From contig CAXIUT010000261.1 in assembly GCA_964035545.1 (NCBI GenBank), positions 1 to 21,123 of the forward strand: a stretch of DNA of 21,123 bases, in the 5' to 3' direction. Numbering within the stretch: the first letter of the stretch is position 1; each line of letters starts with the position of its first letter. The stretch comes from Bugula neritina. Its lineage: Eukaryota > Animalia > Bryozoa. The notes beneath the pieces are model-generated. The model made no database searches, was not told the DNA's origin, and saw only the letters and a program-made list of their open reading frames with translations. A program made the position numbers and the translations under genes. This document shows positions 1 through 21,123 of this stretch, piece by piece.

Positions 1-80
1 CCCAACCCAACCCCAACCCCAACCCCAACCCCAACCCCAACCCCAACCCCAACCCCAACCCCAACCCCAACCCCAACCCC
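1..80 (+). repeat. Left telomere (CCCCAA)n
   Basis: 80 nt of C4A2 starting CCCAA, with one unit lacking a C, ending CCCC|T. Confidence 0.98.
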
Positions 81-633
81 TAATTAATTATCCATTTAAA
101 TTATCAAAATTTAAAATCATATTCAAAATGTTATAAACCCATTCTAAAGCAATATCAGGTTATTATTTGCATCTAAATCAAGATATAAGTGTTTACAGAT
201 CAATAACTCCCATATTTTTCAAATAATTATTTTTCCCGATGACCCACCACTTGTGACTTTCCCATCTTAAACCCAACACCATCATCTACCCATCAAAAGA
301 CTCAAGACAGTCTCCTGAATCATTACCTGTCATTATGATTTTCTACTTTTGGTAATATTCACTTTGATGAGGTTGATGATTTTTTCGATGAGATCTTAAA
401 ATATTTCAGTAATTGTTAGCAGAGAAAGAACCTTATTTATTGAATTCTATTTAAGCTGTCTTATATTATTTATAGCGTTTGAACTGAAAAACCCAAAACT
501 CTAACGTATTTCTTCTCTTATAAACTCCCATTCAAATCAGTGGATTAAAAAAATAACCAAGATCGAACATAAAACAGTTTATATTAATAGAAAAATTATT
601 ATTGATTTTTATCTTACTATACTTTTAACATCA

Positions 634-1175
634 ATGAACAAATTATTGGCTCTTCTCCTCCTTTTACCCTATCAATGGGTGGCATGTATATTAGCATCAA
701 AATAGTTTGGTAATGATAAATATATACAGAGTAAAATAAATAAATATTTAGGAACAAACGGTAATTAATAGATAACTTAGAAGTATTGGTTTGATTAAAA
801 TAAGAGTATTTGAAGAAAATATTTTTTAGGACAATCATCCGTAATTAATTAATTACAAAAGTGTACAATTATTTTAATATCAGCAGAAGACTCATCAGCC
901 TCATCAGCCTCATCAGAATCAGCAGCCTCATCAGAATCAGCAGCCTCATCAGAATCCCCATCTCCTGTATTTTTAATAAATAACTCGTAAAAAACTTTAA
1001 TAAATTTAGAGGTAAAAACAAATCGACTTTAGTGAGTGTATATCTTAATATACGAAGATCTCCTTTGAAAAAGTAGAGTAACTATCAGCCAATTCAGAGT
1101 AACAATACTATAATCTAGAATCCATTGATCCTCTCCCATAATTCTAACCCATCACAATTTTTAAACTATTTTTGA
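634..1175 (+). CDS. Putative secreted Ser-rich protein encoded by a micro-exon gene (splice form and 3' end uncertain)
   Basis: ATG634 gives signal-like MNKLLALLLLL. There are 13 GTA..AG units of 20-24 nt (686-883 and 987-1118) flanking a central exon SEDSSASSASSESAASSESAASSESPSP. Splicing the second cluster gives ...VSISFEKVENPLILSHNSNPSQFLNYF-TGA(1173-1175). Confidence 0.6.
686..883 (+). other. Tandem array of 8 tiny intron-like units with 1-11 nt exons
   Basis: Units at 686-705, 710-729, 731-751, 761-780, 783-804, 806-829, 841-861, 863-883. All start GTA and end AG. Spacers are 4,1,9,2,1,11,1 nt. Confidence 0.8.
892..954 (+). repeat. 9/18-bp coding tandem repeat (SSA/SSE/SAA)
   Basis: Seven consecutive 9-mers of tcatcagcc, tcatcagaa and tcagcagcc. 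Confidence 0.9.
987..1118 (+). other. Second cluster of 5 tiny intron-like units
   Basis: Units at 987-1009, 1012-1032, 1038-1057, 1078-1097, 1099-1118, all GTA..AG and 20-23 nt. Spacers are 2,5,20,1 nt. Confidence 0.7.
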
Positions 1176-1314
1176 TTATCTTTGAAATTATTATACTTTA
1201 TTTATATCATTAAAAATGATTAAAAACCTGTCATCAATAAGATAATCTCAAACAAAAAACAACTAACAAGTAAAAGACTTATAAACTCAATAATGAGATT
1301 TACTTTTGATTGAA

Positions 1315-1719
1315 TCATTTCTAGATCTGTAGATTTTACTCTCCCCACGGAGTATAATAGATCTTGTAAGAACCATGGAAACTGCAAGAACCTCCGCATC
1401 CGCAATGAATCAGATATTGCTATCTCTGATCCCCATAAACTTGAATTCCACAGTTAGAGACCAACTAGGGATTAACACCAACGATATTTCCCGGAACTCC
1501 TCCTCTCAAATCCACAGAACATCCAAAGGCCTTAGCCGCGCAATAAGTGCAAGCTGTAACATAGTATTGAGATCCTTCTTGTACAGCACCATCAATATGG
1601 CATTTCGGGTCACTCCAACCATTCCAGACAGGGCAATGATCAGAGACCCAATGACAGTCATCACAAAGACCAACGATCAAGAACAAAGACAAAATAGTCA
1701 AAGAAAGAAAGATTTTCAT
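1315..1719 (-). CDS. Small secreted cysteine-rich protein, 134 aa
   Basis: Signal-like MKIFLSLTILSLFLIVGLC followed by 10 further Cys. With TAR=Glu the frame stays open to TGA 1317-1315 (...HCGCGGSCSFHGSYKIYYTPWGEENLQIEK*). Confidence 0.85.
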
Positions 1720-1771
1720 GTTATCAGAAACTCTTATCAAAAATAATAATTCTCTAAGAAGATTTAGAATG

Positions 1772-1864
1772 TCAAAAAAAAGTATTTCAAAAAAAGTATT
1801 TCAAAAAAAGTATTTCAAAAAAAGTATTTCTTCAAAAGTATATCAAAAAAAGTATTTCTTCAAA
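1772..1864. repeat. 14-bp intergenic minisatellite (tcaaaaaaagtatt), about 6 copies
   Basis: Direct tandem copies, the later ones degenerate, about 50 nt upstream of the Cys-rich gene ATG. Confidence 0.9.
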
Positions 1865-1937
1865 ATATAAGTCCATTGAAAGTGATATTATAAACAATTT
1901 TTACTCGTAAAGAATATGAGTTATAAATAGGAAAATA

Positions 1938-3027
1938 TCACCTCATAAATACTTATATGACTTGAAATGAGTCAAATTACCAAAAGTATTCTGAGTCTGT
2001 TCATTCATCTTCTTATCACTTTGATGCAATTCAGACACTTTTGTATTAGTCGATCGACTTGCTTTAGTCTACTAAGGAATTATCTCAGTCTAACCCAACT
2101 ACTCTTGATAAGTTCTGTCAAAACCTCTGCCTATTACTTCAGAAGGAGGCGACTCAGATTAATTTTCATCATCAGATTATGCAAATCTACCTATCAACTG
2201 AGGTTTTGAAAAGATTTTATCGAATTATTTTTATTTTGAGTTGATATGTTGATGATTTTAACCTTTTAGATTAGTTAAACTTTTTATATCTTGCTTTTTG
2301 TTTAATATTCTATCAAAACCTTCTATTTTAACTTAATTTTTAGATCTTTAAAATTAATTTTTATGTATTCCTTCTTATTCGATCTTTATTTATTTTTTAT
2401 CAATCATTTTTTATTTCTTTTATATTATCTCCATTTCTGGCACTTTGACTTCTGGATAAAAGACACCTTGCTGTTGATACCCAACATTACTTTCCATTCG
2501 TTTTTTAAATTCCATCAACTGAGGTCTCAATTGACTAACTCCTTTATTGATTGGCATCTGATGTGGCACAAATGGTTAATTAAATGCTTGATTATTTTTT
2601 CCTTTATTTCTGAAATATTGATTTTATTATTTATCTAATAAATTCATAGTAGTTTCTGGTATTTTTATATTACTACTCCATTTGTTATTTTACATATGCG
2701 ATGATGGAGTAGCCTTATGATTCCAAACTATTCTATTGTTGTAAACCGTTTCATATGTCTTATGTTTTGTTTATTTCCTTTATACTAGAAGTTATTCTGA
2801 TGTAACATCTTTTGGCTGTTCTATTTGATGCATACTAGTTGGTCTCTTTTTAGTGATTTCTTAGAATTTTTAGTTTATATGTCGATCTTCATCTATACTT
2901 TTTATCCCTTTTTCGATAAAAAAGGAACTTCTGATGGCTATGTTGGAATATTTCTTTTAAGAAAATATTTTTACTTGTCATCTTGAAGCTAACCTGAACA
3001 TCCGAAGTCAAATGAAAATTTATCCAT
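1938..3027 (-). CDS. Hypothetical charged, low-complexity protein (~350 aa)
   Basis: ATG3027 MDKFSFDFG. A 20-nt intron at 2816-2835 joins it to a long TGA-free frame. A probable second 20-nt intron at 1961-1980 gives a stop at 1938 (1943 if unspliced). Confidence 0.7.
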
Positions 3028-3225
3028 AATGAATAATCAAATAAAATTATATCTCCATCAAAATATCAACCAAAAACATCAATTCTTATTATATTGATCT
3101 CATTTCTAACTACTTAAACTAAAATAATAAACTTTATCTTATTTACACTAATAATCAACAATATGCTTTTTTACCAGTAATCAATCTAATTATATGAACA
3201 CAATATTAATAATTATCATCATTAT

Positions 3226-4811
3226 TCATTCACTTTTATTTGGTTTGTTCATTAGTTATCCCTCATGCTCATTTTCTTGAGGATAGATTACCTATATTTT
3301 ACTCTATTATTCGATTCTTTAAAACTTTTCACTCAGTCTTGTACCTGATCTTGGCCTATCTTTGATCCCCTCTGACTATTAGTCATGAAGATCTACCATT
3401 TTAGCTTTCTTTTAACTACAGCATTTACCTACAATAACCAAAGCGAGTAAACAAATTAGTAAAATACCCAATATGATGGCAAAAAGATTAAATATTTAAT
3501 CTTTCTATTAAAATACTGCATCTATATATGTTGTTGGACCTCTGTTAATCATCACAGGCAGCTATTTCTTGCTACTCTTGCTTTATTAAGTACAAATAGC
3601 ATTTTTAAAGATTTATATATTCTTTTTTTATAAGTTAAACACAATATCTCGATCTACCATCCAATTCGCTCCTAATATATACCTATCATAACTCTATATT
3701 CCCAGACAAATCTCATCTCTATTCGAACTCTTCGCCAAAAGATACTTAGTAGGACTCCAAGATACAACCTCTCCTTTAATCTAGATATCTAATGAAGGAA
3801 ATATCTCTTGTATGAGATCGAAGATAGTCTCACCTTTATCAGTAGATATTTTGAAACACACTCCTTTGCCAGATTTAGATACTTGACATTTCTAACGATA
3901 CTGTGCACATGAATTTTTCAATATCCTCAGAGCTATTTTATAATTAGCTGATGGAAAATATGTAAAAGTAGATCCTGAATCAATAAATACTCCATAAATG
4001 CCCAAATAATCTCCCATTGATTTAATCAACTCTTTTCCCATTCTGAACTAACCCACATCATTTAGTGTATAAACGTTATGCTTATCACTGTATGAAGTAA
4101 CAATAGAGGTATTCTAGACATGAGTTGAAGGACTTGATCGACCGATAGCCAACTTCCCTCCGTTTTTAGATAAACACAAAGAAAAGAGAAACTGTTCTTT
4201 TGTTATTTTTGAATGTTTCTAATATAAATGATCTAGTAATTTGAAGTTTCTTGTAGGACTTAGGCCGAAAATTCCATTGGCAGCTTGAGTATAAAACAAG
4301 TTAGTTTCTCTTGTAGTGCAACCAAATATAGTCTTGATCGATTCTCCAACACTATCCTTCTCGAATTGTATACTATCTTCAATAATAATGCCTGATAATG
4401 AACTTCCTTCAGCATAAGATATCGAAAAAGAACAAGGATCCTCTCCTTTTTTGTTTTTACAAGTATTTTTACACAACTAATGTTTAGAATTCTTGATATT
4501 AATACTTATACGCAGGTGATAAAGTGACTGGATTTGCTATCTCCCAGCCGAAATGGCTGCTGAATATGCTTTTTACCACAGTAGGTGCATTTGCTGCAGG
4601 GAAGAGCGAGGAGACCACTGCCAGTGTCCATGATGACTGATTGTTATTGGGGAGGAGAGCCGATGTATATGTTAGCGTAGTAGTAGCCGAGAGTGGCGTT
4701 TCCGTAGAGAGTGATTGTGTGAGCTGGAAGGGAAGGAGGAGGAATAGGAGAGGTGATATCGTAGACTGAAGTACTTGAGGCTAGGAACAGGATGAAAAGA
4801 AATATGATCAT
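3226..4811 (-). CDS. Membrane-anchored A1 aspartic protease, plasmepsin V/ASP5-like
   Basis: Signal peptide; YYYANIYIGSPPQ..VIMDTGS; Cys insert CSKCTYCGKKH; YAEGSSLSG; FGCTTRETNLFYTQAANGIFGL; second catalytic motif DSGSTFTY; ILGANW; C-terminal TM helix. One 20-nt intron at 4492-4511; TGA 3228-3226. Confidence 0.93.
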
Positions 4812-5098
4812 TTGATGATTGATTATATTTAAATCAAGAATTATATGATTCACAAGTGGAAGTTAACAAATAGATTTAATTAATTTTAAGATATTAGACT
4901 TTGATTTCATAGTAATTTAACAAAAAAAATAAAATATTAGAAATATATATTTTTTAATTATTTATTATTTACTTTATATGATTTACCCCTCATCGCTTGT
5001 CTAAAGAATTATTTGCTTATTTATAAAATTGTGTTTCTTATAAATTGCATCATAGCCTCGAATTCACCTTACTAGTATACTGATCTTTAAGGTTTTTA

Positions 5099-5179
5099 CC
5101 CAACCCCAACCCCAACCCCAACCCCAACCCCAACCCCAACCCCAACCCCAACCCCAACCCCAACCCCAACCCCAACCCC
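5099..5179 (+). repeat. Internal telomeric tract (CCCCAA)n, 81 nt
   Basis: Perfect CCC(AACCCC)13 in left-end orientation. Confidence 0.98.
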
Positions 5180-5352
5180 TTATTATGGATATAATTTTTA
5201 TATATATTTGATAACTTTTTCAAGATGATTTTTTATACTATCTAATAACTATCTTTCATTTTACAACAAATATGATAAAAATTCAAAATACATCGAATAA
5301 AATAAATAATACTTTGATGATATAACATAAGATGATTAAAAATAGTGCTTAA

Positions 5353-6530
5353 TCATTATGCCTGAACTTCTATCTATTTCTACTAACAAACTTCAACATC
5401 AACCATCTACCCCTACTCCACATATTACTCTTCTTCCAACTGCTTCGATATAGTCGACTCAATCATATCAATCTAAATCTCCCTTTATTTTTAAACATCC
5501 TTCTTCTAAGGTTACATTTCCACCTTCACTTATTATTTCGGTTTTAGCTCATTCATTTCTTTCTACGAATGTATTTCTTTATGATCTTAGATTATTTCCT
5601 GGTTTTATATTGATATCGCTTGCTATGAACCCCTATTCGATGTATTATTCGATTCAGTAGTGTCTAACTACTTCTACTCATTCAAGGTATCTACTGCTGG
5701 AGGTTTAATATACTTATAATACACTATTTGCAGTATGAGGGAGATATCTGCCATCTATTGGATCGCATTTACCAGAATGAATTGCAATGGTTGACCCTAT
5801 ATATCATCATATTTGTACAAATATTATAACAAAAATAAGTTAGTTGAGATCTTGAAGAGCATTGAGGAAAGCAAAAGTATGAGAGACTCCTTTGACTCGA
5901 CTTTGCCTCAAATTTTACAACAACTGAGGCACAAGCAGTGAAATCTGAGATAAATACAAAAATACATCAACCAGCATAGCACAATAACCCATAAGCTATC
6001 CAAGCAGTGTGAGTTAGTAGTTAGCAATGATCTATCCTAGTAAGATAACAGAACTAACAAAAATAATGATACAAATTACTAGAATAATAAAGATAATACC
6101 ATATTTATTCATAGAAGACCAATACCAGAAATGTTACTATTGAGCCATGATTTATTATCCATTCTATTCTCTTCTATCTCCCTTTTACTACCCCTTCTTC
6201 AAAAAATATCCCTCTTTGTTCATAACGCCAACACACAACTTCAAAAGACAAATCTGCATCTATTCTTATCTACTTGCAAACATATCATCAGAGCTGCCTG
6301 GATAAGCAAGGCCTTTGAAAAGTTTTTAAAGATAAAAAAACCAATTTTAAGAGTATTGCTCATCAACAAAGTCGCACATACTTTGATAGAAAATGAACCA
6401 ACCGATTGCCGTCTCCTAATCAAAAAGTACTGCACGACAAAACCTATCAACGGACACACCACAATGCCTACCTCATAGAGTATGTACCTAAATTATAAAG
6501 ACCAAAGAGAAGATCAGCAATGACAGTCAT
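5353..6530 (-). CDS. PQ-loop repeat membrane protein (SLC66A2/PQLC1-like), paralog A
   Basis: Motifs QSVGSFSIKVC..LLMSNTLKIGF, LLIQAALMI, HFWYW, LLVPQLLENLRQSRVKGVS, GQPLQF; long acidic tail. Introns at 6468-6487, 6254-6273, 6079-6099, 5945-5965, 5797-5818. Confidence 0.88.
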
Positions 6531-7635: not shown

Positions 7636-10472
7636 TCATTATTATTTATTTTTACGTCTACTCATCAGATCTTTCATAACATCTTCTGCCAATTTTTAAG
7701 ATTTACTAACTTGCTAAGCCAAAACCTCTTAAAACTAAACCCTCTGTTTCTCCAACAACTAATTCTGTGATTTGATAACCCTCTACATATAAAACAACTT
7801 CTGCTACATCGACTGAGGACATTTCCCCACCCCCTTTTTCTTAAGATCACCCAAAAAGGATTCATAATTCATCACCTGCTACATATTCAACTTCTATTCC
7901 CTCTCAAGACAACTTAAAACCTGCTTGTATTTAGCATACAATTCCTTCATATCTTCGTCTTAGTTATAATGACTCTATTTTATCTACTTGACCTTCTATA
8001 TCATCGCCATGAAAAATTTTTAATCGATAGTAGTTGATTCTTTAGTCTCCTTTACATTCTATGTGTCAGTTTGTTTTTTAGAATGAGGCAACTACTGCTG
8101 CAACAGTGATATCAGTGGAGTATACAAATCTTACACCATAAATTACTTCTATTATTTTACAGGATAATCTCCCTTTTACTACTAATCCATCTTATCTATC
8201 TTCTATTTGTGCTAATCCTCTTTTGATTTTTTCGATGATTTTTATAAAATCTATAGTGCTAGTGTTTGCAAGTCATCAGCAAATGATTTGGATCTTTATG
8301 TATCAGCTTTGTTTTTGATATAATTGTATTATTTATGACTAGTAATAGGTTTTACATTTTGATTGATATTCAAACTAAATTTCTTTTTAACTCCAGCCTC
8401 TTTCTTATCAAAATAAGAATCAACACTCAACTCATATCGATTATCTTTCTTCAAATTCATATTCACCCTTATCAACTCGATCAAATTCTACAAACGCTAA
8501 ATCAACTACTCAGGCATCAACTTGTTCAAACAACTATTAAATAAAGTCTACAATGATAATTTGATAATATTATCATTGCTATTGGTTATCTGATGAATCT
8601 CTCTCGTATTCTCCTTCAAACTCTAGTATATCTATGATAACGCCAACACCTACAACCTCTGAAGCTCTTCTCTCACATTCAAATTTTATAACTAGTATGT
8701 TAGGTTTTTCTATCGCTAGATGTTCTTTTAAATTTACTATCTTACTCTTAACTGCTATTCTTGTATCTTTTGCTTTTGATTCAGAAGTCTCTAATTTTAT
8801 TATTAGAGATCATGTTTTTATTGTTATAGATGATTTTTTTATTATTTTATTTTTGTGTTTTCAGATTTTAGTTGCTATTGCTGCTATTGTAGATATATAT
8901 TTTATTTTTAGTAATGAAGGCATTTCTATTGTATCTGCTATTTTTATTTTTAAAGAGTATTGTATTTCTTTATCTTATATTCACTTTATTTCTCAAGAGC
9001 TATATATCTTTATTATATTATTCTCTTTTATTACTATATCATCTTCTTCTACTACGAAAGAACTATATTTTCCTACTTCATTGCCTACTTCTCCTGCAAT
9101 AAAGTCTACCTCTCTTTTTATATCAATTTCTTTTACTCCACTAAATTCTGATATTAAATCTATACTTTTTTAAGCTAGCTTTTCATCTAGCCAACTCTCA
9201 CCTCGATATTATCCCTCTCCTCTTTCAATGACCGATTCTGATCATTAATATCAACGTACTTCTTCTAGCTAACTCCAAAATAATAACCCATCAACTTCTC
9301 AGGATCATCAGTCTATATATCCCCCAAACCCTTATTACTAAATTCCTTTTTAATAAAAAATACCAACTTATCAATCACCCTCCCCGACTCCTTTATCACT
9401 TCCTACATCTTTGTTATTAATAAATTTTTTGATTACTACTGCTCTTGGAAAAATAACTTTTTAACAAAAAGACGATAAGCAGAATCGATCTTGCTCTCTT
9501 TATGAAGAGAGGGTACATGAACTATATCACTATTCAATTCCAAACAAAAAGGGTCTTACTTTATCTGATGCATTTTATTTGCTGACAGTAAAGGTTTACA
9601 TAGATTTTACTCTTATATTTAATTTTCTAGACCAACTTTTCTACTATTTTTATTAAACAACTCATTCATAAAAACAATCTCCTTCTCATCAGCACAAAAC
9701 TCCCCGAACTCTCCCTCCAATTTCTCTATTTTATTTCCTACCATATTCTAAAAAGACCCAACAAAACCCTCCAAAATCTAACTCCTGTCCCCCCCATTCA
9801 TCCGAATGATCTCCTCAACTATCTCCTCATAAACCTTCTCCTCTTCTAAACAATCTTCAATAGTTATCTCTTTTTAAATCATCAACCTACCTATATTATG
9901 CTCTATCTCTTTCCTACTATTAAATAAACCTATACAACTAGAAAGCGATATCTCTGATAACTTACTATCATACTCCTTCACTTTTTATATAATATTCGAT
10001 ATGTATTTCTACTATTACTTATTTTGACGATAACCATCCACCCCCTTCACCGCCCTAAACCTCTCCTCTCTCTCCTCAACCAACTTACCAATCATTTTAT
10101 CATAATCTAATTTTCTCTAGGTCAAAAAATGACTAATCAACCTCAAACACTTCTCCTCTAACACCCTAAACTTCTAATCATCTTTCTTAATGGCCTATTT
10201 GACGTATAACTTCATCTGCTAGCATTTATCTTTGAAACACCCCTTAGGATTATTTCTAACTATCGCCTGTATACGACCAAATTACTACATCTTCATCTCC
10301 TTCTTAACTGATAAGTAATTATTGATGTATTTTATATTTATCTACTACAATTTGTACAACCTCCTCAGGATACTACCCTCATGCATGCTAAATTGTTAGA
10401 TCATCTTTAGTGTTGACTCACGCTATAGGACTAGTTGGCTTGATAATTTTTATATCTAGGTGCTTTGATCTG
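7636..10472 (-). CDS. Long coiled-coil protein, 5'-truncated (at least 944 aa)
   Basis: One TGA-free, E/K-rich frame runs from the telomere junction at 10472 to TGA 7638-7636, with no AT-rich upstream region. Confidence 0.85.
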
Positions 10473-10559
10473 CCCAACCCCAACCCCAACCCCAACCCCA
10501 ACCCCAACCCCAACCCCAACCCCAACCCCAACCCCAACCCCAACCCCAACCCCAACCCC
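10473..10559 (+). repeat. Internal telomeric tract (CCCCAA)n, 87 nt
   Basis: Perfect CCC(AACCCC)14 in left-end orientation, abutting an open reading frame. Confidence 0.98.
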
Positions 10560-10757
10560 TTTTTATATTATTTAGGTTATTTATTTATATAAAACAAAAA
10601 ATTAATATTTGTTCTTTTGGTTTTATTATTATAGTAAATATTCTACTATATTCTACTATATTGTTATTTATATTTGTTTTTAGATTATATCCGTTCTTAT
10701 TCTACAAATTTATTCCTACCTCTATTTTTATATTAAAATAGAAGAACAACAATTTCG

Positions 10758-11534
10758 ATGTCAGGTTTTTCTACTCTCAAAACATACTACGAACAGCCAT
10801 ACGATCAATCCCTCAAAATCTTATCCTCCAAATAATCCCTCCTACCACTTCTCTAGAGCAGAGTACTAGTTACTTTCCTCAAACATCTTGAAACGCTTCC
10901 ATTATCTGCCCCTCTCTAATCAATAAAAACCCTCATCCTAACAATCCACCTTCTAAAACTCTCCCCAAAAACAATCAAAACAATCTTCCCCCACCCAAAT
11001 CTAAAAATAAAATAAAAAAAAGATAAAAACATAGACACAACCCTCACCCATCTACTCATAGACAAACTAACCCGATATCTGAATTATCTACTGGTTCAAC
11101 CTTAAAGTTAAACAACAAAAGAATAATAACTAGACATTCTAACAAAAGATATCAACCAATTTAAAAATATACAATATGCTAAAAATGAAATTATCATAGG
11201 ATATGCCTAATACGTATACTGGTACATAGAATAAACCATCTTTCAACTATGGATCAGAATCGCAAGACAAATACCTTAACTATCAGTGCTTTCAACTGAG
11301 ACTTTTATTGTTTTTTATCAACAATATTCTCTCTTTTGCACTTATAAACGAAAAATACCTATAATTAGACATAAATATCTAAAAACTGTAGTGCTGGATG
11401 CCCAAATCAACACCAAAATATAAAAAATGTATCGATCTATACAATAACCTCAAGAATGTGAGAGTATTTTAGGGTAAAATAAAGGTATGAGTAAGTTGTT
11501 GGATATGATGGAAGATATCGACGATGATTTTTGA
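10758..11534 (+). CDS. Hypothetical protein, 258 aa, possibly a divergent ANTH/ENTH-like helical domain
   Basis: Open from ATG10758 to TGA 11532-11534. IKTLILTIHLL and LTRYLNYLL loosely recall ANTH motifs; the domain call is weak. Confidence 0.7.
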
Positions 11535-12671: not shown

Positions 12672-15600
12672 ATGGAAAGGTTCATAGAAAGAGATATTGC
12701 AGACAGAGACATCTAGTTTTCTGATCGCAATGAAGCTCTCAACCAAAACAAACACTAAGAAGACTACTAACCTTAGATAACTGAGCCCTGCCCTCATAAA
12801 GATCTATTCCGTTACTCAGATTTCTGGGACAAACTTCTGATGATTCTAGGAAGCATCTTCTCAGTAACCAACGGATTTTCTGTTATTTTCTACGCAAGAC
12901 CTCTCAAAGACCTCATCAACGCCTACCGACCAGATTACAACTACTAACAACAAGTCCAAAACATAGCCAACGCCTCGAAATCATTCGCTCTCAACGGAAT
13001 ACTCGTATTCATCAGTTGCGCATGCATGAATATCTGCTGGACTATTGCCAGTCAACGCCAACTGATCAAAATCAGAAAGCTTTACTATAAGTCACTGTTG
13101 CAACAAGAACTATCTTGGTATGATAAAAATAAACCCGAATAAATATGTAGTGATATGTACGTTCAAACCCAAAGAGCCCAAAACGCATTCGTATAAAGTG
13201 TCACAAGCATGCTAACCTGTCTAAGCATGTCTTTGGGTTCAATAGTTGTTTCCTTTATTTTAGGTTGGAGACTAGCAATAGTTTTGAACTCCTATGTACC
13301 AGTGATCGTTGTTTTGAACTACGCCAGATCAAGATACAACATCAAAGCCAAATCCAAAACCTCAGATCTTACCATGAAACTCAATGGAAGTGTATTCTAG
13401 GTTTTCTAGAATATAAAAACAGTCAAATATCTCAACGGATAGGATTACTAATAAGAAAGATATACAAAAAATTTGAATAAATACAGAGATATTAGTATAA
13501 GACTCAACAAGAAGATGTCTGTGATTTGGGCCATTACAGCCTTCGCATCCTATGCTGCTGTATTCGCCTTGGGATTTTGGTATGGAACCAAAATGGTTAT
13601 CTAAGGAGTTTATAATAGCAATACTGGTTAAATATATACCATTGGAGATGTCATTTCCATATTTTTTTGCATGTATATATCAGCAGTCAACTTTAATCCT
13701 CTCTCTGGACATTTCGCTAACCTCACAGGATGCAGGATAGCTCTAGCCAAAATCATACAAATAATCTAAAGAAGGCCGCGTAAATCTCAAGGATTCCAAA
13801 CCTGCATGACCAACATAGAATAAATATAATTCAAAAATATAACTTTCCACTACAACAAACCTCTATTCGCCAACTTCAACATGACAATCAGAAGAGGAAT
13901 CACAGCTCTAGTCGGCACCTCAGGAAACGGCAAAAGCACACTCTTAAATCTACTAATCAAATTTTACTAACCCTTCCACGGAGATATCATTCTATGCAAT
14001 GACAATGTAGAACAACTAGTTCGAGATATAGATTAGAATAGTCTCAGAGATAAAATTGGATATGTAGGACAGTAACCTGTTTTACTAGGAAGAACACTAA
14101 GAGAAATATTAGTCAGTACTGAAGGAGTAACCGATCAACGGATATGGGAAGTATTGGATATGTGTTGTATTGCCGATCTTATCAGATAGGTGCGATTAGA
14201 CACTCCGTATAACATGGTCAGTGGAGGTCAAAAACAAAGATTGGCCATTGCTAGAGCTATCCTCAGAAATCCCTAAGTTCTTATTCTTGATTAAGGAACT
14301 TCAGCTCTCGATAGCATCAACTAAAGACATGTACTGGCCAATATAAAACAACATTCTGGCATTCCTTTTATTATTATGATCGCACATAGAGCAGAAACTT
14401 TATCATAGGCCAACCAAGTCTTCAAAATAACAAAGGGAGAAGTATAAGAAGTCAGAAAGAGTTAATTTGAACGCGTGATGAAAGATATCGAAGAAAACTA
14501 AGCTGAAGAAATGATTGATGAGTAACAAAGAGCATTTGAGGAGATGTAGATCTAAAACGAAAGGATATCATAGAGAATAACCTAAAATTCATAGAGAGGT
14601 TCAAATAATGGATCATTATAGGAGTAAAAAGTTAAATTCAAATGGTCATATTTCTGGAAACTAATCGATATCAACAAAAGATACAAAAAGAAATACATAA
14701 TAGGTATCATCGCAGCTATCCTACTCGGTGCCATCTTCCCCAGCTTTTCATTGATACTCGCCACCCTCTGTAACCTAGGAGTACAAGTCTAGAGTACAAG
14801 CGATGCCAATTAAATAGAATAACTTACATCAAGAAGTCACGTCCTATCACTCTTCCTCTTCATTGTTGCTTTTTTGAATCTTATCATGATCATTGTCAAG
14901 GAATGGTCTTTCGTAGATATTGGAGAGAATCTTAGTGTGGTTCTTAAAAAAGCAGCATTCAAAACTACAGTCAACTTGCCTATGGCATAGATATAAAAAA
15001 GAGGAAAATCTTCATTGGTTCATCTGGTTAATACCAGTACTGATCATGCTAAAAATTTAGCATCTATCACCATATCGAGTTTCTTTGATGTTTCTGCCAC
15101 CATGGGAGTAGGTCTAACTATTGCCTTTGTACATTCCTGGCAGATAACAATAGTGGCATTTCTTTTGATACCTCTTGTTGTGGTTTCAGGTTTTATTCAA
15201 AACAAACTTCTTACGACTTTATCAGAAAATGCAGATAAAATATATAAACAAACTCACTAGATGGTTCTATAATCCATCATAAACAATCGCACAGTCGCAA
15301 GTCTCAACCTTCAAGAACGCTACATAAAAGAATACGACTTCAAACAAGATGAAGGCATGAAAATAACAAAAAAAAATTCAGTTTACTCCGGTCTAACCAT
15401 GGCAATCTCACAATGTTTAATGGCTTTTACTATATGTCTGATCTACTATATTGCTGCAGTGATATGTTAGAGTTATAACGTTAGTTTCGCTGATAGTTTT
15501 ATCGCTATCTATGCTATCATGTTTTCTGGCATTCAAGCAGGCACCAATATCTAATTTATCGGAGGCATGTCCAATGGATTTCTAAGAACAGCTCAATACT

Positions 15601-19042: not shown

Positions 19043-20770
19043 TCATATTTGAGGTACAACTTGGAACACCTAGAAATCTATAATTCTGCATTGCTTTCCC
19101 TCCTTCACTCCTGTCAAAAATTTCCAACTTTCCTGGCAAGACTCAAACTGATTTTTCCAATTATAACTATTGGGGAAGTTAGTTATGCACTGAAGTGTCT
19201 TGTTTGTTTAGAAGATCTCAAGGTCTCTTAGGTTAAATAATGCTCCAAAGATGGGTCCCATATCATAATCATAGTCAATAGCACTTTTTCCATTTCTGAT
19301 ATGTTCCAATTTCTCTTTGAGATCGATAGCCAGCAAGAAGGTATTGTTTGTATTATCATGTCCATGTTTTTTAGCTTTCAAAGGAGTAAAAGCTCCTATA
19401 AGTTTGTGGTGTTAGGTTTTTATAATAGTCAATGTATTTTCAAAGGAATCGCAGACTTGATGATAATGATTCAAATTGAAGTCGTTTTACGAGGCACGAT
19501 AAATAAATTTTATTTATTTTGGAAAATTTAGACTTTCAAGAATGAAATCTGTTGAAGATTTATTCATTACCAGTTTAGATTATAATTTTGTTAGCTAATA
19601 TTGGTTAAATGGTTTTAATGCATCCTGGTAGCTACTTCTTAACCTGTTTTTTATCATTAACTTGCTTTATTTTAATTTATTCAGTATTTTTTCTTCCCTT
19701 AAATTGTTAATTTTCCTTTAATTTGAAAAGTTTTGCATCAAATCAAATAACTAACTACCAGATAGTTTCACATCTTTCTTCTCTTATTTTTTAAAGCTCA
19801 ACTTTTCTGATGATATCCCTTGATAACATAGATATTTCTTCAACATATTTCTACTATTTTAAACCTACTCTTTAACTTTTTCACCCATCAAATAGATTTT
19901 CTTAGCTATTTCTTTCTGTCTCTTTAAATTTTAGTTCACAGCTTCAACAAATTTAGATAAACCAAATTTCATAAAGCACAGTTTATGATTCTATGAACAC
20001 TTTTTACACTTTTATGATGAACAAATATAAGATTAACTTTTACAATCTTTTTATGCACAAACCATAGAAACCTACTCCCCTCCAGGACACATACCAGATC
20101 CTATGTTGAATTCACATTATTTGAAAAATTAATTAAATTTTTCATTGTTTTGTAGCTCTTAAATTTAAGAAGAGTTTTAATTTACAACTAGATTTTATTT
20201 TATTTAGTTGGTTTTTTCTTAAGGATATAATTTTTTATTTATTGACATTTCATATTATTTTCTTTCAAGATTATGTCTACAACTTGCCATCACATTAGTT
20301 CTTTTAAAAGGTTTGTATTAAAAGAAATTTTTGAATTTTTAATGCCTTATTTTCTAAAATTAATCATATCCAAATTGAAAATATTTCTTAACCTCCGCTA
20401 AACTTTTACATTCTTTCTTCGACTTATATTTTGTAACTGTTGATTTCTTTTAATCCTCCTTCAGTTTAAAATCATAAACTTATTCTTTAGAGAAGAGTTT
20501 CATTTTTTAATCATTGCTCGAAATCTCATTCTCAGTAATTTAATCAAGTGGACCACATTCCTCCTTCTTTTCCTAACTCATTCTTTCTATCTCACTAGAT
20601 TCTTCACTTTCTTTGTTTTCTTTCATTTCATGTTACACATCAATATGTTCCATCACCAGATCAGAGTCCAAGTTCTCAGGAATTTCAGAATCAGCTGACC
20701 CTCCTTCACAAATGATCTATTCAATAGTCTAACTATCCTCTTCTTCCTTGTTCATGCATTTTGCTTCCAT
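19043..20770 (-). CDS. TLDc-domain protein with a B-box-like Cys/His cluster (~575 aa)
   Basis: IYRASENDFNLNHYHQVCDSFENTLTIIKT..LIGAFTP, GPIFG and terminal DFEVFQV match TLDc. Cys cluster CPGGEEVSMVCAEKDCKSESYICSSEKCKKCSENHKLC. May start at ATG20826 via an intron. Confidence 0.88.
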
Positions 20771-21030
20771 CAACCCAACCTTCAAACGAATAACGAATAA
20801 CTGATAAATCAAACGAAAATATCCATTTTTATATAGTTAGAAAAATAATGATTTTTAAGTTATTTGGTTCAATTCTGGTCAATGACTTATTTTTAAATTA
20901 TCAATCAATTCACAAATGAAAAAAATCAAAAAATGTAACAGCACATAAAATCAAAAGATAATTTGATCATAATTAGTAATAAATCATATTTTGACAAAAA
21001 AAAACAAAATGATAATATTATAATCTACCA

Positions 21031-21123
21031 GGGGTTGGGGTTGGGGTTGGGGTTGGGGTTGGGGTTGGGGTTGGGGTTGGGGTTGGGGTTGGGGTTGGGG
21101 TTGGGGTTGGGGTTGGGGTTGGG
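21031..21123 (-). repeat. Right telomere (TTGGGG)n, 93 nt
   Basis: Perfect (GGGGTT)15GGG at the end of the window. Confidence 0.98.

Follow-up and report, generated by a model that had tools for sequence, protein, structure and literature searches.

How short can the exons of a gene become, and how closely can its introns be packed? The question is raised by positions 686-883 of a 21,123-bp stretch of DNA, here called the window, which is contig CAXIUT010000261.1 (C270 in our numbering) of the Bugula neritina assembly GCA_964035545.1 (216 Mb, 321 contigs). On the plus strand, these 198 nt tile exactly, with no leftover letters, into eight units that begin with GTA and end with AG, separated by spacers of 1 to 11 nt. 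We suggest that the best single explanation for this stretch is an array of tiny introns with micro-exons between them, and we give this reading a probability of about 0.5. The figure is no more than about one half because every step from DNA to RNA, from transcription of the plus strand to the splicing of each unit, is inferred, as is translation of the product, and because several partial-splicing and relic scenarios fit the same letters. The observations that bear on it are the DNA pattern and its improbability by chance, the closure of the reading frame in the allele carried by sequencing reads, and larger arrays with codon-like spacers in the same genome.

The organism concerned is a ciliate. 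The window carries C4A2 telomere repeats at its start (1-80) and G4T2 repeats at its opposite end (~20950-21123), and its long open frames contain TAA and TAG and are closed by TGA only; telomeres at both ends together with TGA as sole stop identify it as a complete ciliate macronuclear chromosome, some 21 kb long and telomere-capped.

The tiling at 686-883

Read in order, unit 1 (686-705, 20 nt, ending in TAG and with A at position 15) is followed by the putative micro-exon TTTG (706-709), unit 2 (710-729, 20 nt, CAG) by a single A (730), and unit 3 (731-751, 21 nt, TAG) by GAACAAACG (752-760). Unit 4 (761-780, 20 nt, TAG) precedes AA (781-782), unit 5 (783-804, 22 nt, AAG) another single A (805), unit 6 (806-829, 24 nt, TAG) the spacer GACAATCATCC (830-840), and unit 7 (841-861, 21 nt, AAG) a single T (862), after which unit 8 (863-883, 21 nt, CAG) closes the array. 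The spacers thus measure 4, 1, 9, 2, 1, 11 and 1 nt, or 29 nt in total. All eight units begin with GTA and end with AG, four of them with TAG, two with AAG and two with CAG, and the same boundaries recur in all three units of a second cluster downstream and in a further candidate at 1099-1118. The exact parsing claimed in the original prediction was thereby verified, and so was its statement that the units are not sequence repeats of one another: Tandem Repeats Finder returned nothing on 686-883, and the aligned units have a mean column identity of 46%, which rules out a tandem repeat or minisatellite.

The eight-unit tiling is far beyond chance, and it exists on one strand only. We defined a chain as successive GTA..AG units of 18-26 nt with spacers of at most 12 nt. 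The comparison with shuffled sequence for which the original prediction had called came out in its favor: among 300 second-order Markov shuffles of the 21-kb window the longest chain had four units, against the eight observed. When 300 sequences of 21 kb were instead drawn from the first-order composition of the 198 nt themselves, the longest chain had seven units and appeared once. One further chain of at least four units is present in the window, a five-unit chain on the minus strand at 9034-9165, which lies within a long open frame rich in GTA and AG codons and looks like a product of chance.

The array is also real DNA and no assembly artefact, since 686-883 is reproduced letter for letter in Logan contigs of two independent sequencing runs (X1 and X2). 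Rfam gave no match in window positions 1-2500, and a BLAST search of 600-1200 against the genome returned the self-match only, with no paralogue, second copy or complement.

Ordinary introns and larger arrays of the same ciliate

Intron statistics were drawn from ~166-175 kb of ciliate DNA in this assembly, in which the distances from GTA to AG form a single sharp peak at 20 nt. Once arrays are masked and the candidates are filtered for low G+C, A at -6 and a TAG end, 49 are 20 nt long, against 5-12 at 19, 21 and 22 nt; about 85% or more of stand-alone introns measure exactly 20 nt. Their consensus comprises an A-rich exon end, GTA, a T-rich interior, A15, T16, any nucleotide and TAG. Codon-usage scoring was tried as a means of choosing strand or frame and of recognizing true introns independently of homology, and was abandoned: the signal was too weak, and was dominated by units of 3n length inside open reading frames (ORFs) and by the repeat.

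Outside arrays, intron-like units less than 6 nt apart are absent from the ciliate DNA sampled, and arrays therefore form a separate kind of object rather than the extreme of a continuum. We surveyed ~175 kb of ciliate DNA for them and ran three pattern scans of the assembly, of which the 21-nt pattern matched host satellites only; the host-animal satellite loci L002-L013 and L035-L044 are by-products of these scans. Taking as the class any run of at least four tiled GT..AG units of 18-24 nt on one strand, 686-883 belongs to it with eight, and three further arrays were checked, with 29 units (C285), 12 units (C147) and ~84 units (C209).

The most regular of these, at 5816-6442 of C285 (locus L014), consists of 29 units of two alternating 20-nt types in 13-14 copies each. 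Within each type the units are nearly invariant, with a mean per-site diversity of 0.06 and 0.02, whereas variability in the array peaks in the 1-nt and 2-nt spacers that separate them (diversity 0.75, 0.69 and 0.41). The third letter of the spacer triplets is mostly T, as expected for codons of this AT-rich genome, and the joined spacers spell 15 codons in frame with ORFs on both flanks. An invariant scaffold with varying spacers is difficult to account for if it is not the spacers that carry the information. One of the two types, unit A, has no copy anywhere in the 216 Mb outside its own array. Local tandem amplification therefore built the array, and the spacer letters subsequently diverged, or were kept different, on an unchanged scaffold. 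We also considered that the units might be excised as ~20-nt RNAs with targets, or that they might belong to a dispersed "introner" family. The former idea found no support, as BLAST of 600-1200 of the window detected no second copy or complement and unit A is confined to its array, and the latter was rejected on the same confinement and lack of second copies.

The other two arrays are heterogeneous. On the minus strand of C147 (5387-5658, locus L016), 12 units of 18-23 nt are separated by spacers that total 28 nt and are similarly irregular to those of 686-883. Removal of the units joins a 262-codon ORF that starts with M-G to a 92-codon ORF that ends in TGA; no such junction results if the block is taken out as a whole. 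The 364-codon gene in which this array lies starts with M-G-T-C and has a Cys/His-rich region, a coiled-coil-like region and hydrophobic end segments, and its micro-exons encode the Cys-rich C-L-D-S-C-C-Y-C-Q. The array of C209 (~13300-15300, minus strand, loci L033/L034) extends over ~2 kb, with ~84 units of 19-24 nt and spacers that alternate 1, 2, 1, 2 almost throughout. About five of its units have a broken GT or AG, and its donors include GTT, GTG and one GC. Unit length in arrays is looser than in stand-alone introns (in C209, 40 units of 20 nt, 24 of 21 nt and 14 of 22 nt), and the 21-24-nt units of the window are therefore typical for the class. Seen against these arrays, 686-883 may be regarded as a small, diverged and irregular member set in an otherwise ordinary gene for a small secreted protein. 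More broadly, we would put at slightly less than even odds the proposition that in this ciliate stretches of genes, and here and there entire genes, are written as tandem ~20-nt spliceosomal introns with 1-2-nt exons, the coding sequence being put together letter by letter in dozens of serial splicings.

Reading frame, gene model and rival explanations

The gene would begin with an ATG at 634, the start of an exon (634-685) for a hydrophobic, signal-like peptide. In the window sequence this exon has 52 nt, and when the 29 nt of micro-exons are added the frame of ATG634 reads ..V-A-F-TGA. The contigs assembled from X1 (886 nt, covering 81-934) and X2 (375 nt, covering 561-934) both carry an extra A behind 663, at 100% of depth in each; the X1 contig is otherwise identical to the window. 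In this +A allele exon 1 has 53 nt, and with the same 29 nt ATG634 and the downstream E-D-S-S-A share one ORF. The extra A changes the end of the exon-1 peptide from ..LLLPYQWVA to ..LLITLSMGG, and the full peptide becomes M-N-K-L-L-A-L-L-L-L-I-T-L-S-M-G-G. Signal peptidase acts where small residues occupy positions -3 and -1, a rule that the S-M-G at the peptide end fits. With all eight units removed, I-L-R-T-N-E-R-Q-S-S-S continues into E-D-S-S-A-S-S-A.., and the micro-exon reading contains no TAA or TAG. The frame G-I-L-R-T-N-E-R-Q-S-S-S-E-D of the original prediction does not hold with ATG634 in the window, where it begins at another ATG (674); it holds only with the extra A of X1 and X2.

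The missing A is plausibly a consensus error of the assembly, since the window shows several other 1-nt indels against both read sets; it could also represent a third allele. Differences of this kind between the window and both the X1 and X2 contigs are found at 663, 1148, 1744, 2846 and 3243, mostly in homopolymers, which probably reflects consensus indel errors at ~1 per kb and matters for any argument from reading frame on this genome.

Downstream of the array, repeat finding and frame delimit an exon rich in Ser, Ala and Glu (884-986), with a period of 9/18 nt, a multiple of 3. It is followed by the second cluster of candidate introns (987-1057), whose three units, at 987-1009 (23 nt), 1012-1032 (21 nt) and 1038-1057 (20 nt), are separated by AG and TGAGT, and then by a candidate of the textbook stand-alone type at 1099-1118 (20 nt, GTA, A15, T16, TAG). 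Since 6.8 kb of one strand holds about one canonical 20-nt unit, a plus-strand candidate within 120 nt is unlikely to be there by chance. If the second cluster is left unspliced, the ORF ends at TGA 1033-1035, just where a hypervariable stretch abruptly sets in; if both the cluster and 1099-1118 are removed, it ends at TGA 1126-1128. With either end, the indel polymorphisms of non-3n length (1131, 1148 and 1254) fall into the 3' UTR. The hypervariable stretch itself (1044-1121) holds 11 single-nucleotide polymorphisms (SNPs) in 78 nt between strains or haplotypes, three of them adjacent at 1044-1046, and adjoins ~480 nt (561-1043) with 2 SNPs and 1 indel between haplotypes.

The opposite strand offers a gene model of its own, in which the plus-strand tiling would be a coincidence. 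A TGA-free frame of 160 codons runs on the minus strand from 1151 to 672 and would encode an acidic protein rich in D, E, S and A that starts with M-G-E-D and includes the stretch G-D-G-D-S-D-E-A-A. By codon score its acidic repeat ranks first among the six frames, although the codon scores outside the repeat are no better than noise and the score rests on few repeated codons. TGA-free frames of 100-240 codons are, moreover, common in this AT-rich DNA, and an eight-unit tiling is very unlikely to arise by chance. By hand count, strain SNPs in 1058-1130 fall on third codon positions in 4 of 8 cases for the plus-strand frame and in 1 of 8 for the antisense ORF, and the contig from a third run (X3) has a 2-nt deletion at 1131, inside the antisense frame. 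We consider a real gene on the minus strand very unlikely.

We posit instead that a plus-strand gene from 634 to ~1035 (or 1128) would encode a secreted Ser-rich protein of ~77-80 aa, and that its signal-peptide exon is separated from its Ser-rich exon by a diverged representative of the tandem arrays of tiny introns that form a class across this genome. The spliceosome would define each intron across its own ~20 nt, by its initial GTA, its terminal AG and a branch A that lies ~6 nt upstream of the 3' end. The eight units would be removed one by one, in series, because neighboring units are too close for simultaneous handling. The 29 nt of micro-exons would remain, encode I-L-R-T-N-E-R-Q-S-S-S and set the signal peptide in frame with the Ser-rich domain.

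A number of observations weigh against this reading. The window's own sequence lacks the extra A, and the product of eight-intron removal there hits a TGA stop. Five of the eight units measure 21-24 nt, against the 20-nt norm of stand-alone introns to which the other three conform, and A at -6 is present in 5/8 units only. The original prediction had matched the units in size and boundaries to the introns of the protease and PQ-loop genes on this chromosome, of which the boundaries agree and the size does not, beyond those three units. The spacers lack the 1, 2 alternation of the large arrays, with four of the seven measuring 1-2 nt. The antisense acidic frame scores 0.45 against 0.17 bits per codon, a value that pertains to 27 highly repetitive codons. 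The product has no homologue with which to be compared, and the BLAST search of 600-1200 found no paralogue in the genome. Three runs of unlabelled kind contain the locus (X1, X2 and X3), and their contigs behave as DNA: over 81-6000 they follow the genomic sequence collinearly and nowhere skip 20 nt. Among the runs searched, no RNA run contains this organism, and ten runs labelled "RNA?" under the same name lack the sequence; metagenome scans for the Ser-rich exon and for the predicted spliced C285 array gave no match.

The reading frame, too, is less decisive than it may seem. A product that is stop-free and in frame also results, in either allele, from 24 of the 256 ways in which units can be chosen for removal, because TGA is the sole stop (TAA and TAG being sense codons) and because four units are 3n long. 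Frame logic is therefore no proof that all eight units are removed, and we value the frame match at only about a factor of three. Such counts lend themselves to a scheme of partial or regulated splicing, in which only some units are removed and the rest translated as AT-rich coding sequence, or in which subsets give isoforms. Unspliced, the ATG634 frame meets a TGA after ~27 codons in the +A allele and after 60 codons in the window allele; the latter stop (811-813) lies within unit 6, and in the window allele the removal of this unit alone is enough. In the +A allele unit 6 would have to go together with unit 1 and either unit 2 or unit 4, and units 3, 6, 7 and 8, being 3n long, are frame-neutral. 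Yet partial splicing leaves unexplained both the leftover-free tiling and the intact GTA and AG in all eight units, its required removals include the least canonical unit (24 nt), and the large arrays in C285 and C209 could not be read through in such a way. We regard it as unlikely.

Intact boundaries bear likewise on the notion that 686-883 is a relic. It would then be a copy, now in decay, of an array that was formerly spliced; it would belong to a subtelomeric pseudogene or a non-coding transcript, and its closure of frame would be coincidental. The locus lies 550 nt from the telomere, it has neither homologue nor paralogue, its exon 1 contains a 1-nt indel polymorphism or assembly difference, its unit lengths have drifted off 20 nt, and ~5 units of the C209 array have a broken GT or AG. 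Against decay stand the GTA and AG preserved in all eight units and in three or four more downstream, and the near identity of haplotypes over 561-1043, as opposed to the 11 SNPs in 1044-1121; the read-supported allele also has a coherent ORF with a signal peptide. A relic seems to us doubtful.

It is also conceivable that the 198-nt block is removed with no micro-exon kept, either as one long intron from the GT at 686 to the AG at 883 or stepwise in a recursive-like manner. As 198 is a multiple of three, the window sequence would then join ATG634 to S-E-D-S-S-A in frame, but the product leaves the Ser frame in the allele of both read sets. An intron of 198 nt would have about ten times the length at which introns are fixed in this ciliate, and stepwise removal has no 0-nt spacer, hence no AG|GT ratchet site, on which to act. 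Nor does block removal join the ORFs that flank the C147 array or account for spacers that vary like codons in C285, and we hold it to be quite improbable.

The original prediction, that these are real introns with micro-exons just after a signal peptide, consequently stands in part. The tiling is non-random and strand-specific, the plus-strand model is coherent (ATG634, a signal-like N-terminus, the Ser-rich repeat and a TGA), the read-supported A yields one open frame, and larger arrays with codon-like spacers exist in the genome; what did not stand is the frame of the window sequence itself and, for the five units of 21-24 nt, agreement with the 20-nt norm.

The ciliate chromosome and known splicing systems

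The assembly that contains the window is mixed, with C1-C9 set apart from C10-C321, and combines host-animal, ciliate and bacteria-like contigs. Very large contigs (coordinates >33 Mb) with non-ciliate satellites represent the host animal, some 300 small AT-rich contigs capped by C4A2/G4T2 telomeres form the ciliate part, and contigs with 45-48% G+C (C200, C300) are probably bacterial. The ciliate probably lives with or on the sequenced animal, as a cobiont or epibiont. Some of its contigs have internal telomere-repeat blocks (C10 at 9690-9747, 10930-11011 and 19623-19680; likewise C11, C14 and C15), which could be sites of alternative chromosome fragmentation and telomere addition, or could mean that several chromosomes were joined in one record. 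C10 also carries a ciliate tubulin gene (locus L017, 2209-2835, minus strand, an open frame of 457 codons), the matched domain of which has neither an intron nor TAA/TAG codons, unlike most genes in this ciliate.

By Pfam matches to stop-free pieces, the window encodes a pepsin-like protease, a PQ-loop protein and an ABC transporter. Convergent with the array gene is a gene for a small Cys-rich protein at 1297-1720 on the minus strand, with a signal-like N-terminus (M-K-I-F-L-S-L-T-I-L..) and no Pfam match. A tandem repeat of ~12-13 nt (AAAAAGTATTTC-like) occupies 1745-1870, between two genes, and is polymorphic in length, 56 nt being absent from one X2 contig (joint 1786 to 1843). Elsewhere, a G-V/G-L dipeptide repeat lies in an open frame of the minus strand at ~5090-5190, near which contigs break (5100-5190), and a P-Q dipeptide repeat in an open frame of the plus strand at 10469-10560.

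Tiny introns as such have precedents. In the Bigelowiella nucleomorph, introns are 18-21 nt long. Among ciliates, they measure ~20-30 nt in Paramecium and 15-16 nt in Stentor and Blepharisma, and small introns are also reported from Nyctotherus (PMC2633312, PMC9505925, PMC12862383, PMC13685798). The units described here resemble these in being AT-rich, ~20 nt long and bounded by GT(A)..AG, and in the sharply fixed length class of the introns, which is 20 nt in this ciliate. The tiny introns of ciliates and nucleomorphs, in contrast, are single and scattered between normal exons; here the units stand in tandem with putative micro-exons. The original prediction knew of no description of such arrays in ciliates, and our literature search likewise yielded none of tandem tiny introns or micro-exon arrays in this group; a published study of seven peritrich genomes does not mention introns.

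Exons of a single nucleotide have been described in Arabidopsis (PMC4674806) and in CYP621A of Fusarium (PMC12940212). In those cases, as is predicted here, a 1-nt exon between two introns restores the reading frame. They are, however, isolated, lie between normal-sized introns and have been proven by cDNA or homology, whereas the array at 686-883 has three candidate 1-nt exons in its 198 nt, with dozens more in its sister arrays. The micro-exon genes of schistosomes, as set out by DeMarco et al. in 2010, reportedly have exons of 6-36 nt in multiples of 3, long introns, and variation by exon skipping. They share with the gene model proposed here a secreted product, a signal peptide in the first exon and a subsequent run of very short exons, but here the exons would be 1-11 nt long, only one of them (9 nt) a multiple of three, and the introns 20-24 nt. 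The schistosome analogy drawn in the original prediction thus breaks down over the two features that define such genes, long introns and exons whose length is a multiple of 3.

Recursive splicing uses zero-length exons in long animal introns (PMC2773006, PMC4482092), and likewise removes a long intervening stretch in successive steps. Its AG|GT ratchet points keep no exon letters, in contrast to the array, where at least 1 nt, apparently coding, would be kept per junction. Finally, the host gene SNHG14 carries SNORD115/116 in tandem introns (PMC11608373) and recalls our arrays in its many consecutive introns; in C285, moreover, introns are conserved more than exons. The introns of SNHG14 are kilobase-sized and contain snoRNAs, whereas here Rfam was empty and no 20-nt unit had a second copy or target in the genome.

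An array of this kind would be a new form of intron and micro-exon architecture. In current models of splicing some exon sequence is needed, be it for U5 contacts or for exon and intron definition, and 1-nt exons are regarded as singular curiosities. If the arrays are spliced, intron recognition can rest wholly on ~20 nt of intron, in a spliceosome with no need of exon context; adjacent introns that lie nearer to each other than the footprint of the spliceosome can be removed in series; and single nucleotides can serve as the pieces in which coding information is stored. No denser packing of introns and no shorter constitutive exons would then be known, and the arrays would lie in a blind spot of gene finders and RNA-seq aligners, the minimum exon and intron sizes of which would miss such genes. 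Even if unspliced, the arrays would still be an unexplained strand-specific pattern in DNA. The arrays in C285 and C209 are the sharper test objects, to which 686-883 adds a diverged, irregular form within an ordinary small secreted-protein gene. Were the reading true, it would also raise the question of how such arrays originate, for which C285 points to local tandem amplification of a unit made of an intron pair plus a codon, followed by diversification of the codon letters.

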